From positions 14,250,642 to 14,314,641 of the forward strand of contig OZ037770.1 in the NCBI GenBank assembly GCA_964035545.1: 64,000 bases of DNA, given 5' to 3'. Below are positions 1-6,685 of this stretch, piece by piece. A model generated the notes under the pieces. That model searched no databases. It had not been told where the DNA came from and saw only the letters and a program-made list of their open reading frames with translations. The stretch comes from Bugula neritina. Its lineage: Eukaryota; Animalia; Bryozoa. Position numbers and translations under genes: made by a program. How positions within the stretch are numbered: position 1 is the first letter of the stretch; each line of letters begins with the position of its first letter.

Positions 1-877
1 TTCATGCAAACTGATTGCACTACTAAAACAAGAATTGTAGCTATTGTGTTCGTAATTCTTATTATTACTATCAACGCCAAGTCTTTAATCAGGGAACTAA
101 GAGCTAATTCATATCAGGATGAACAAGGTGATAAAGCAGATGGATTAAGAGAGGACATATTACTTAGAGTCTTAGACCATTAGAGGAATTCTATTAGAGC
201 AGGAATCATCTCCCACGTGAATATGACATAAAAAGCTAGCCACTGAAATATATGAAAGATTGTAAACAACCCAGAAATCTGTTAGCAAAATGAAAATGAG
301 GCCATCCCATTGAGAGTATTGAAAAGATAATTGATAACAATAGTTTATTCCAGACATGCTTTTCCCTGGAATTGATTACATATCTTGCAATAAAGTAGCC
401 AAAGTATGTGTCCCCTGACCCCCCCCCCCCACTGATGTTGCTGGGAACTTATTCTACAGTGCAGTTGGATGTAAACATTTAGAATACAAAGTAACTCATA
501 CATAGGAAAGTTCATGGAATAGGGGAGGTGTTCGTGGAACATGTTGGAACAGAGCCAGGTGCCAGGGAAGCTACTAAAAGTTGGGTGCAAGCGGACTTAA
601 ACTAAACCAGTCTAGTGCTTTTTTCCCTCCACTTTTATGCATTGATGAAGGCTATTGCCAAGTATTACTGCTTTCCAAGCATTGAAACAGGAATTCATGT
701 ACTGGGACTGCATGGGTTAAGGAAAATAAACTTTACTACGACATCCAACAATCTCACTGCCAAACTGCAACTATTGCACAGGTAGGAAATTATTCAAAAG
801 ATTGCAGTAAAAAGATTGCAATGTTTTTATTAGCTGGCAGCCAACTAGTCAAGGCTTAGCAATCGTATGAGAAAATA

Positions 878-1104
878 TAGCCTGAGTGAATAGTTAGCAT
901 AGCCTGAATATACAGTTAGCATAGCCTGAGTGTACAGCTAACATAGCCTGAGTGTATAGTCAGCATAGCCTGAGTGAATAGTTAGCATAGCCTGAGTGTA
1001 TAGTTAGCATAGCCTGAGTGAACAATTAGCACAGCCTGAGTATATAGCTAGCATAGCCTGAGTGTGTAGTTAGCATAGCCTGAGTGTACAGCTAGCATAG
1101 CCTG
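878..1104. repeat. 22-bp minisatellite (TAGCCTGAGTGTATAGTTAGCA), about 10 copies, in a hexokinase intron
   Basis: Directly visible tandem units ending about 10 nt from the exon 6B donor. Confidence 0.95.
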
Positions 1105-1113
1105 CGATCATAC

Positions 1114-1213
1114 CTAGTATGAGGCCAATACCACAAGCCCGGTCTTCATATGCACCAGTCATCAGGGTGCCTACTGCATCGTTTAGTATAGCCACTACTT
1201 CTACGTTAATATC
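1114..1213 (-). CDS. HK: Hexokinase alternative exon 6B
   Basis: Bounded by ttgcAG|GAT and CTAG|GTatga; 100 nt, phase 0 to 1, [33 protein letters not shown](G). Confidence 0.93.
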
Positions 1214-4200
1214 CTGCAAGCAAATCAGCACTTCATGATTTAGAAGCCGACAGTTATGAGAGGAGCTGTAAGTTCCCGAGAAGTACATATCTCTAACTAA
1301 CCAATGAGCTGGTTACACCAATGAACACTGAACGAAGAATAGCAGACGTGAAAGGAAAGGATGGGCAAAGATGACAACTTCATAACTGAAAGAGAGCAAA
1401 CATTGGAAACACAACTCCTGAACACGACAGCTAAGGTTCCATCATACAGTACTGTGTTGCCTTACAGACCCTGTGTAGAGTAGGTGGGGAGAATGTAACT
1501 AGGCTGAGGAATGTTAGGGGTGTACCGGCAGGTTACTCTGACTGGCGCAGCCCTAACAGAGAACAGACAGACTAAGCAGAGCATGCGGAGAGATGCCCAT
1601 ACCTAGACCAAGTCCCACAACAGTGTCTCTATCATAGTACGAGCCTGTAAGTAGGACCCCCACAGAGTCGTTGATGATAGCTATAACTCTTAGTCTAGCA
1701 GGGAAACCCTAAAATAGATTTTATCTGCCAATTGATAAGTGAAGAGTGCTTTACTCCAAGATGATCTTTTATTTATACTTATCCAAACCTAATCATTAAA
1801 TAAAACAAACAATTCACAAATATTCTCTTCTAAGCCTCACATTGGACAATTTGTGTGCTTTGTTACCACCAAAAATAAAAATATAAAAAGCTCCATCATG
1901 AGTAAATTAACTAAATAAGTCACAACTAAATATGTCATGAACATGACACTTGCAGCCCGTGTCACAATACCACACATAAAACACATGATGGCATGTGTCA
2001 CATAACCAGGTCGGTCATACCACCCAACGCCATGTGTCATAACTGCATATGTCATAGGCATGTCACCAGTATGCTTACATATAACCTCCTGACAATCTGA
2101 CTGAAGATGCCACATAGCTCCACATGTCAGTATGTGTCACATGTTGACACAGCAAAAGCACCTGCTACGCAGTGCCTGCTGCAGATTTCACTCAAATAAT
2201 TCACTGCATTACCTTCCGTCTTTCGATCGCCGCTTCCAACATCTCCACAACATCCTGCATGACTGTGTCGGTGCACTTGAACTTCTTGGTCCAGGTTAGC
2301 AGCAGTGCATTTCTCAGACTACTTTGGATCATTGGGAAGGAAAAAGTAAATCCTAAAATATAAATCACAATACTTAGAATAATATTTTAGAAAATATTCT
2401 AATACTTATAACCCAGCACAGTTTCGATAAAATGATGGTTTTCGAAAACAATATTGTCAAATCCTAAGGAAATGTTAGACATAAAAGTCTTGTTAATTTT
2501 TCAAAGCTTTCCAACTACCTGTATTCACTTTTTAAAAACTCTGGGCATTAGCTTGGAGCAAATTTATCCTGATTCAAAATCATTTCCAAATTATTCGACT
2601 CAAAGGGCATTTACCACTGAATAGCAGCTAAGCTAAACACAATAAATAGAAGCCATTACCTAGAGGTATAGGGCTGGCAGATTTGATGTTCTCCGAGTGT
2701 AGAAGTTTTGCTATACTATCAGCTAAATAATCAAATAGACTGGCTCCAGTACCTGTCAGTATTCTACAAAACATGGTATCCATATTTACGCAATAACTAT
2801 CAGTGTAATTGGAAATTAACCCAGAAATATATATTCAGAAAAACTAATTATTAATCAAATTGGAAATTGACATACATCCGGGAAATAAACATCAACAAAA
2901 TCATATCAAGGTCAAGTTTCATCAGTAAGACGTGCAGTGAGCAGTATAATATGTACATCAATCAAATGAGAGAGAAGACAACAACCAATTCTACGGCAGT
3001 CTGAATCATAGGTTACAGTCAAGAGCAATGGCCATTTTTGTAGTCTATAATGCTGCATCATCAGCATAAACTCAGACCACGGCCTGAGTTCTTGTAGTAT
3101 AGACTTACGGGTCGGGTATGACATAATGCTGCATAATCTCCTTAGTCTTCTTCCCTGCTCTCATCTCCATGTATATGACCCGGAAGTTAGTTCCACCTAG
3201 ATCTAGGGCTAGAAAATCTCCATTTTCTACAAAATTCAAAATCTTAATCTAAGAAAATATTTGTGTACAAGTTGCCCGCTCTCTCCATGACAGGATTTTA
3301 GGCTAATATTTACAGCTACAACATGTTTCAACTGCTGCCGATTGTTTGGTAAACAAATGCTGCCACATGAACAAATATTTACATAACTGTTTGCACAAGA
3401 GAAATCAATGCCAATATCAGCTGATATTTGCAAAGGTCAGGCAAAGAAAAAAGATCTACAATCATTCTGATAAACTTGAAATTGCTGTGTGAGGGTTTAG
3501 TGAAAAATAAAGTAAATATTATGCAATGTGATTGCCTGCTTAATAAATCTGTTATTTGCATGTACAAGTTTGAAACCAGGAAGCAAGCCAATACAATAAA
3601 TCAACTTACTACAATTTACTTTACACTTTTTAACTTACTTATTATTCATAACTTACCTTATACGTATGACTTACTTCAACTAACAATCAACTTATAATCA
3701 ACTAAGAAGCTGAAAATGCAGGAAATAAGCAAATTTCTGAGACTAGAGAGACCTAACAAAAGAAGTGAATTAAACTGGTGACTTCATTGGTTATACCCCA
3801 AGATCACAGGTGTTTACTGCACTCTAGTTCAGTAGAGAGAGCGGGCAAATCCGAAATACTTGTATTGTGACCACGTAAACAACTCTATAGCTAGCACATT
3901 ACAATAAACTTGCTAAATATTAATAGTAGGGGGTTTCACTCAGCGTTGCCAATCCACGTAGTATTGCAAATGTGCACGCCCTGCTATGGTCATGCTAGTT
4001 GCTCTACCATATAACGTGCAGCTAAAAACAAGCCCTACTACTTTTCTAGTGCATATAAAAAAAGAGAAGATAATTCTAAAAACCGGCTGATCAACGGTTT
4101 TTTATTCCACTGCTTAGTATCAGGTCATTAATAAACTGGTCTATCAGCTTATTTTTGAGCCACAAAAATACAATTTTTACCTCCAATAAACAAATTAGAA

Positions 4201-6685
4201 TAGTACATGAAATAGCAATAGTATTGTATATATAAAAAGTATATTCTAATTTTCATTATCAACAAACACCAGTAGCAAAGTAATGAAACAGTTGATATAA
4301 GGTGTACTACACACCTGTGCCGTTTATAGTTTCGTGAACAAAAGTGTTCTCCATTTGCAAAGAGCTTTTCTTCCTGTCTTCAGGGTTTCGACTCAACCCG
4401 AGTTTCATTTCCGTCTCCATAACGGACATAATCTGCTCCATGGTGGTCTGAGTGAGGAAAAACTGGCCAAGGACATTGCGAACCTGCCGGTAAACGTAAC
4501 ACGGTAAACACGATGTCTGTCTGTTTGTCTGCCAGTACAAGCTACACGGTAAACACGATGTCTGTCTGCGTGTCTATCAGCATATTATATAGTAAGGCAG
4601 TCTGTTGCATTCAATCAAGAGTTTTAAAATATATGTAGCTGCGTCTGACTCTTGAAAAAGGCCAACACTAAAACTTATGCCAGTCAAACTACTGCTTCAA
4701 TTTTTCATTCATAGAATAGTTCATTAGAAATACATGTGAGTAAACCAACTTCCTTTACATATGTCTATTAGTGGATATATGTTTTATTGTTTACTAAAAT
4801 TACCACCACATTCCAATATCGTATGAAATAAAACATTAATAAGCATGATCCTGACTGACATTTAGGAAAAGATAACTCCTAAGTATATAGAAACTACGAA
4901 ATCTCAACCCTCTCTCTCCTGTGACCTTTTGTAAGATAGCAAAGTGTACCGAAATCTTTTTAACATAAAGCAGACAACATTCTGCTTAGCAAAAAATTAC
5001 ACATTTAGTTGGACTTATACCAAAAATATGCAAGCATCAACAATAAAAGTAATTTTAGATTTCCATGTTAGTTTTACAAACTTGACCTTGTGCGATATGC
5101 TATGATTATCGTTACTAAAATAATGTAATATATCATAATACAATAAATATATTCTGAACCACATCCTTAAAGCTATGGTCATATGTAAACATTCTTTGTA
5201 CATCAACTGCTCCATGGCTTCCAGACAAACATGTTTGTAACAATCTTGCGTAACATAAATATTTTATGAAGCAATATGACTGCCATATAATCTGATCCAG
5301 CATTTGATGAATTACTTAGGCATTGTTATTATTTAATTGGAGACAAATGGTAGCAAATTGATGCACTCTGAATTCTTGAGTTGAACTAGTGAAGCTAAAA
5401 AAACACAAGTAGATCTTTAATCTGATAAAAATGCGTATAGTGTGCCAAGTCGTATCATATTACCAACTAGCGTATCATATTACCAACTAGCGCTGGAAAA
5501 TCTACTAGATATTCTTTACTATAAGTCAGCAGTTAAATTTGAGATTATATTGCCAGGTGGAAACAACTCTTACAAAGATGTTTTCTAATGGCAAGTGTTA
5601 GTAGTGTTTGCACATTGTGAGTAGTATTGGTTATATCGAAACTTGGTAACGTTGGGAATTGTCTGACCATAAAAAACTGTTGCCCTGGATCCATCCTATC
5701 AGAGATACTGAATTAACAATAATTTCTTTGACTAAACACTTTAGTTATAACTACTGCAGTTTAATATTTTCTAAGGGAACTAGAATTGTGAGACACACCA
5801 TATCTTTTTGTTCAAATATAATTAATAACTAAAGAACATTTATGTTCATACTTCGAAAATGAAAATAAAAATTTAAACATGCGAAAATTCATCAAATAAA
5901 CAATGAGTAATATCGCACAATCGTGTAAATAAAACGTCTAAAAATTCGGAAGCAGGGAACACTAGGCCCAAAGTGAAAGGGAATATTTCATGCTGGTACC
6001 TTGAGGTAATTTGCATTTACTTCAAAGTGTAACACATCACAGCATATTGTACCGGTCGGGATACATTGAGACTACTGATACATCCGTAATACTTACGCTT
6101 CAGACATTTGAGTTATAAATTACAACTGGAATACAAATTAAACTTAAAAACCAGGAAATAAGCAACTATTCCACAAAACATAAAAAATATAATTTGGTTA
6201 TTTGTGGAGACAGCTACAGTGACCATCATTGTGACTATCACTATGTCTATTCTATTACAGTACAGCATCTCCATGAGTTCATGATAATGAGTATCACTAT
6301 CACTGTGACTATCGTTCAGTACCATTGTGACAGTCTGAGTCTCACTATCTGTCATCTATAGTAATAGTAATAGTAATACTAAAACTAAGTCTAATACTAT
6401 AGTAATAATTATAGTTATACTGTTATAGAAATAGTGAAGACTGAAGTTATACTAAGTATGAGTATCACTCTGTTATACTTGTAGTATTACTATTAGTAGT
6501 ATTATATTTAGTTATACTTGTACAATCTTGTACTACTACTTGCACTCACTGACTCAGTACTTCAACTTGTGATTCAAATTGAAATTCACTTGAAATTGTG
6601 TAAAAAAACTAACTTTTTCCAGTTTCTCCGAATTATTTGGCAGATTAAGATTGAGCCTGACTTTTTCAATAACTGATCCTTCCAT
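1114..6685 (-). CDS. HK: Hexokinase, 5' part (3' exons run off the left edge)
   Basis: Phase-compatible GT-AG exons: 6685-6614 (MEGSVIEK...), 4483-4315 (...[10 protein letters not shown]), 3226-3109 ([15 protein letters not shown], phosphate-1 motif), 2763-2660 (LFDYLADSI...PLG), 2352-2213 (GFTFSFP...LLTWTKKFK, sugar-binding motif), then 1708-1603 or 1213-1114 (ND-x-VG catalytic motif). Confidence 0.96.
1603..1708 (-). CDS. HK: Hexokinase alternative exon 6A (paralog of exon 1114-1213)
   Basis: Bounded by ctattttAG|GGT and CTAG|GTatgg; 106 nt, phase 0 to 1, open frame [35 protein letters not shown](G), collinear with exon 6B. Not in the ORF track. Confidence 0.85.
6220..6600. repeat. Degenerate 6-nt-periodic ACT/AGT-rich low-complexity tract at the start of hexokinase intron 1
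   Basis: Runs such as gtgact-atcact-atgtct and agtaat-agtaat-actaaa; translation gives alternating-residue patterns ([15 protein letters not shown]). Confidence 0.7.

Follow-up and report, generated by a model that had tools for sequence, protein, structure and literature searches.

The hexokinase gene carries two copies of the catalytic-loop exon

In Bugula neritina, we found a hexokinase gene that holds two homologous, tandemly arranged copies of the exon encoding its catalytic loop, here called exons A and B, which are likely to serve as mutually exclusive exons and so to give two full-length enzymes from one gene. The gene lies on the minus strand, in the first 4.5 kb of the window, the 64,000-nt stretch of DNA analyzed here (C6:14250642-14314641 of the assembly G000, 216 Mb in 321 contigs), and continues for about 3 kb past its left edge. 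Positions in the segment L014 (G000:C6:14245001-14255000), which spans that edge, are converted to window coordinates by subtracting 5641.

Searched exon by exon, the gene matched both hexokinase domain models (PF00349 Hexokinase_1 and PF03727 Hexokinase_2) along its length. The matches at this locus covered model positions 2-54, 54-95, 131-182, and 179-201 of Hexokinase_1, the first of them at C6:14254957-14255124 in the N-terminal exon, and positions 5-70 and 72-123 of Hexokinase_2, above the cut-off. All expected segments, from VRNVLGQFF... to ...GSGMGAAYVAAVAHRIEQK, were visible in the six-frame translation of L014, and the coding segments had no internal stop; a lone TAA flagged within a Pfam match is intronic, immediately upstream of exon 2. 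The phosphate-1 motif (LDLGGTNFR) is present, and the phosphate-2 motif G-T-G spans the junction between A or B and exon 7 (G/TGCNASYME). We identify the gene as a 50-kDa-type hexokinase. An ATG-bearing exon further upstream of 4315-4483 was not located. In an independent DNA run, X1, contigs span both alternative exons with zero differences, and the 6-kb locus was recovered as colinear genomic DNA without joints, which supports the assembly.

Table 1. Features of the hexokinase locus and the matching exons of its paralogues. Positions are window coordinates unless a contig or segment is named; a slash marks an exon border.
Feature	Position	Strand	Remarks
N-terminal coding exon (VRNVLGQFF...)	4315..4483	-	acceptor cag/GTT, donor CAG/gtgtgt
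Phosphate-1 motif exon	3109..3226	-	Hexokinase_1 positions 54-95
Exon 3	2660..2763	-	splice sites read directly in sequence
Exon 4	2213..2352	-	Hexokinase_1 positions 131-182
48 nt directly upstream of exon A (branch-point and polypyrimidine region)	1709..1756	-	perfectly conserved in L020
Exon A, divergent alternative copy	1603..1708	-	106 nt, phase 0 to 1
Exon B, canonical copy	1114..1213	-	100 nt, phase 0 to 1
22-nt minisatellite, 10.4 copies	877..1104		intronic, begins 10 nt downstream of exon B; outside coding unit
Exon 7 (GTG exon), outside window	L014:5352-5160	-	289-481 bases before window position 1
Further downstream coding exon	L014:4537-4373	-	borders read in sequence
Further downstream coding exon	L014:4063 onward	-	border read in sequence
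Paralogue exon match	C1:7367281-7367370		single copy
Paralogue exon match	C2:9918516-9918611		single copy

Only one of the two copies fits the reading frame at a time

The anatomy and homology of the exon pair, the logic of its reading frame, and the selection on both copies are shown by the sequences themselves. Exon 4 is the upstream partner common to both copies, with its donor (AAG/gtaatg) after a complete codon, and exon 7 opens with gt acc ggc, completing Gly-Thr-Gly; A and B are therefore both of phase 0 to 1. Exon A, preceded by ...ctattttAG and followed by GTatgg, encodes 35 residues and the first base of a Gly codon, and exon B, lying between ...gcttgcAG and GTatga, encodes 33 residues and the same first base. 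The two share canonical AG...GTATG splice sites, phase, and a similar length, and the polypyrimidine tract of exon A is weaker than that of exon B. Reading and extraction of the sequence bore out the earlier note, which had described a second exon inside an apparent intron that aligns with 1213-1114, with AG/GT borders and phase 0 to 1 for both.

The further claim that including both exons or neither breaks the frame also held. When A and B are joined, a stop appears two codons into B, reading G-Y-TAA in the window and G-H-TAA in L020, the orthologous contig of a close relative. When neither is included, the frame of exon 7 is shifted and runs into a stop. Transcripts of these two kinds would therefore be non-productive. 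The intron between A and B measures 389 nt, so steric exclusion is not applicable.

Exons A and B are homologous hexokinase segments

At the protein level, A and B are identical in 16 of 33 amino acids, find each other reciprocally in a whole-genome search (E ~1e-3), and cover the same two stretches of human/rat hexokinase I in PDB (residues 199-230 and 648-677), in agreement with the proposal that they are homologous. The Asn-Asp of both exons falls on hexokinase I 208-209 / 656-657 (human HK1 N208-D209 / N656-D657), as expected from the claim that both bear the catalytic N-D motif; Asp657 serves as the catalytic base in the C-terminal half of that enzyme. Exon B has the higher scores, about double those of exon A (54 versus 27 bits against PDB and 22.8 versus 15.7 bits against Pfam). 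A 35-codon open frame by itself is not rare, and the open frame of exon A and its similarity to hexokinase might be put down to chance within an intron, with no real feature present. However, exon A specifically matches hexokinase residues 202-228 and 649-676 (PDB) and Pfam Hexokinase_1 at E 0.013, a genome-wide search with it returns hexokinase exons only, and it has changed less than its introns and in the manner of coding sequence. A chance origin is effectively refuted by these observations, and we give it next to no weight.

Hexokinases of the nemertean Tubulanus polymorphus (P0012 and P0152) share 76-79% identity with exon B, and among the 272 hexokinase sequences and fragments compared, none exceeds ~52% identity with exon A. 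In a conservation profile built from 147 distinct hexokinase family segments, the catalytic pair has D in 100% and N in 97% of the segments, and Ala8, Asn11, Asp12, Gly15, Gly30, and Gly34 are kept in both copies. Thr13 of N-D-T, found in 95% of the segments, is replaced in both, by Ala in B (window 1175-1177) and by Ser in A (window 1666-1668). Since neither exon has this near-invariant Thr, the paralogue is unusual whichever exon is used. Three changes are confined to A, with Val at position 16 (Thr in 93% of the segments), Thr at position 27 (Cys in 85%), and Gly at position 32 (Ile in 99%). Because exon A departs from these three near-invariant positions, the protein containing it might be a poor or non-classical enzyme. 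Judged by these comparisons, exon B appears to be the ancestral, canonical version and exon A the fast-diverged one.

Canonical animal 50-kDa hexokinases, such as those of Tubulanus polymorphus (XP_074656699.1) and Lingula anatina (XP_013391804.1), have the same domain order and exon content as this gene, but they have a single version of the segment, with N-D-T, whereas this gene has N-D-A in B and N-D-S in A. Two Tubulanus isoforms differ in length (446 versus 472 residues, compared as lengths and unaligned), and a swap of this exon would not yield that difference. No pair resembling such a swap was found among the cluster members of the full-length relatives. The full-length search with P0012 was dominated by vertebrate 100-kDa hexokinases.

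Both copies are under purifying selection

Compared with each other, A and B are identical at 18, 24, and 10 of the 33 first, second, and third codon positions, respectively. Their synonymous sites are saturated (pS 0.75) and third positions are at random level, whereas 73% of the second positions are identical. This does not look like the pattern expected had A drifted neutrally since the duplication, because drift long enough to saturate the silent sites should also have decayed the second positions, the frame, and the splice sites.

A second comparison came from the open reading frame around exon B, which matched a 73-aa protein (P0151) encoded on L020, a 3,638-bp contig of a JGI metagenome. 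L020 is colinear with the window from position 2080 down to -1647 at 84-90% identity, and its introns are 86.6-90.5% identical to those of the window, with numerous indels, one of them a 74-nt gap immediately following exon A. Exon A itself keeps its AG and GT, its length, and an open frame in L020, and differs at 8 nt (2, 0, and 6 at codon positions 1, 2, and 3). Seven of the differences are silent, and the eighth replaces Phe with Leu at residue 2, so that pS is 0.239 and pN is 0.013; with 29.3 of 105 sites synonymous, the binomial probability of at least 7 of 8 silent changes under neutrality is ~8e-4. Exon B is identical at 98 of 100 nt (pS 0.039, pN 0.014), and the constitutive exons 7 and 8 show pS/pN of 0.142/0.020 and 0.244/0.045, respectively. 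Being intact in L020 with a synonymous excess like that of the constitutive exons, exon A is a selected coding exon read in this frame and not a relic. Judged from one close relative, both copies are under purifying selection. Stops or lost splice sites in orthologous copies, either of which would have counted against the earlier note, were looked for in L020 and were absent, both exons being open with AG/GT intact.

We consider it unlikely that just one of the exons is in use today and that the other was recently silenced, whether A as an unused relic or B as a copy replaced by A. The divergence of A at near-invariant positions and its absence from a more distant relative (L026, see below) would fit such a history, but both exons are open, with AG/GT borders and low pN, between taxa whose introns differ by 10-13% and by many indels. 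On that history, silencing must have happened only very recently, either in the two lineages alike or before they separated, and would have left no decay.

Exon A could also be a regulatory poison exon, whose addition to B would create a premature stop and lower hexokinase through nonsense-mediated decay. The stop produced by joining A to B occurs in both taxa, and the sequence around the 3' splice site of A is strongly conserved. On the other hand, the protein sequence of a poison exon need not be conserved, whereas A retains the hexokinase N-D-x-V-G...G-L-x-L-G pattern, seven of its eight changes from L020 are synonymous and none falls at a second codon position, and it has exactly the same 3' boundary and phase as B. 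A poison exon is, on this evidence, highly improbable.

The duplication is specific to this gene and may be lineage-restricted

Beyond this locus, the whole-genome search with either exon returned only two paralogous hexokinase genes (G000:C1:7365366-7371398 and G000:C2:9913983-9920221), with one matching exon apiece; each of these genes has a single canonical N-D-T-V-G exon. As both paralogues are single-copy, the doubling is specific to this gene. A weak Hexokinase_2 match was also seen at C4:11006294-11006548.

In L026, a 429-kb ENA contig of a more distant relative reached through P0048, the matching exons are ~55-74% identical to ours. One B-like exon lies between exon 4 and the next exon, and we found no trace of a second copy of the catalytic-loop exon in this contig. 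As neither L026 nor the two in-genome paralogues have a second copy, the exon pair may be lineage-restricted, with copy A fast-evolving. Either the duplication postdates the split from L026, with A diverging fast before coming under constraint, or A was lost in L026. The suggestion that alternative splicing here is both old and selected is therefore only half upheld: the substitutions in L020 speak for selection, but the age is uncertain, as the divergence between A and B is large and L026 and the paralogues have one copy. The pair that was to be sought in related hexokinase loci was present in L020, and L026 had a single copy.

Contigs L019 and L025 (~79% identity) end short of the A/B region. 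The 51-aa open reading frame around A shared no words with any candidate of the protein collection, a search so limited by length that a blank means little, and a scan of JGI metagenomes with the same frame confirmed no A-type exon. A degenerate exon-A pattern picked up four contigs, which we take to be bacterial, in the JGI metagenomes, all of them chance matches in unrelated open reading frames. As a separate observation, the assembly and L020 encode TGCNASYME...IIDIEWGAFGDNG...GSF in one 193-nt exon (exon 7), and the more distant relatives L019, L025, and L026 have an intron ahead of "(E/T)IIDIEWG". This suggests that an intron before "(E/T)IIDIEWG" was lost in the lineage of the assembly or gained in the others.

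Intron features around the alternative exons

The 48 nt directly upstream of exon A form the longest perfect non-exonic stretch in the 3.6-kb alignment with L020. This conservation would fit a regulated 3' splice site, although it is suggestive only. The stretch comprising A, the intron, and B folds no better than shuffled sequences (z = -0.58), and its folding revealed no conserved competing RNA structure or docking/selector structure. Two candidate elements were rejected: a 12-nt complementarity between exon 4 and the donor of exon A, which is at chance level and made weaker by a substitution in L020, and a GCAUG motif 3' of exon A, which sits in the 74-nt segment absent from L020.

Repeats were observed in the introns as well. 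The minisatellite downstream of exon B has the plus-strand consensus ATAGCCTGAGTGTATAGTTAGC, is present as an array in L020 too, and resembles arrays elsewhere in the genome, e.g., at C6:44787-47041 and C4:23795669-23796468. A cluster of short direct and inverted repeats of the GTGACACAT / ATGTGTCAC type, largely conserved in L020, lies at window 1900-2150 in the intron between exons 4 and A and may represent the decayed remains of a small inverted-repeat element. Downstream of exon B, the intron also has a run of ~12 G (minus strand) at window 421-432.

A putative splicing switch in the active site of one hexokinase

Taken together, these observations argue for a catalytic-loop exon duplicated in tandem, each copy encoding a strand, the Asn-Asp loop, the next helix, and the strand ahead of the phosphate-2 motif G-T-G. 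Splicing would join exon 4 to either A or B and the selected copy to the GTG exon, so that the two enzymes would differ only in a segment of ~34 residues at the active site and hinge. Exclusivity would be enforced at least by the frame, and A would be a fast-diverged version now under purifying selection. We infer the alternative splicing itself, its regulation, and a functional difference between the forms from this arrangement. In glucokinase, the corresponding helix lines the hinge and allosteric region. Since the segment holds the catalytic loop, this helix, and the phosphate-2 strand, a difference in affinity, cooperativity, or inhibition between the forms is plausible, and the isozyme containing exon A probably has altered kinetics or regulation.

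Tandem-duplicated mutually exclusive exons are known from Drosophila Dscam, Mhc, and aldolase exon 4 variants and have been predicted genome-wide in Drosophila and human from neighboring homologous exons of similar length and the same splice phase that break the frame if both are included. All of these sequence features are found at this locus. A full-text literature search returned no report of mutually exclusive exons in a hexokinase.

The nearest functional analogue is exon 9/10 of vertebrate PKM (PKM1/PKM2), a comparison by analogy only. In both cases, a glycolytic enzyme gene has two adjacent homologous exons of near-equal length. The PKM exons are used one at a time, and the resulting isozymes differ in one internal segment, with kinetic and regulatory effects. 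However, PKM catalyzes the last step of glycolysis and hexokinase the first, and the segment swapped in PKM is the FBP-binding and subunit-interface region, as against the catalytic Asn-Asp loop and hinge helix in the present gene. The PKM exons are equal in length, whereas A and B have 106 and 100 nt, and exclusivity in PKM is set by hnRNP/PTB repression.

It is possible, though we would put it forward only tentatively, that the pair acts as a PKM-like isozyme switch at the entry to glycolysis, where splicing would swap the catalytic-loop/hinge segment between a canonical form, B, and a rewired form, A. Form A would have Val for Thr beside the catalytic loop, Gly for Ile in the strand before the phosphate-2 loop, and a Tyr-Tyr pair like that of glucokinase helix 5. 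It might then differ in sugar affinity, cooperativity, or product inhibition, or act in a sensor-like manner, and it might be deployed by tissue or life stage.

Hexokinase isozyme diversity normally arises by gene duplication, as in vertebrate HK1-4, and the three hexokinase paralogues in this genome are likewise diversity of that kind. If our preferred reading of two mutually exclusive exons is true, alternative splicing would in addition swap the active-site segment inside one hexokinase gene, although this opens no new category of mechanism. If confirmed, the gene would supply a natural pair of enzymes whose only differences are at ~17 of the ~34 residues surrounding the catalytic Asp and the domain hinge, useful for learning how this segment sets affinity and regulation, and it would be a metabolic example of tandem-exon mutually exclusive splicing from a little-studied phylum.
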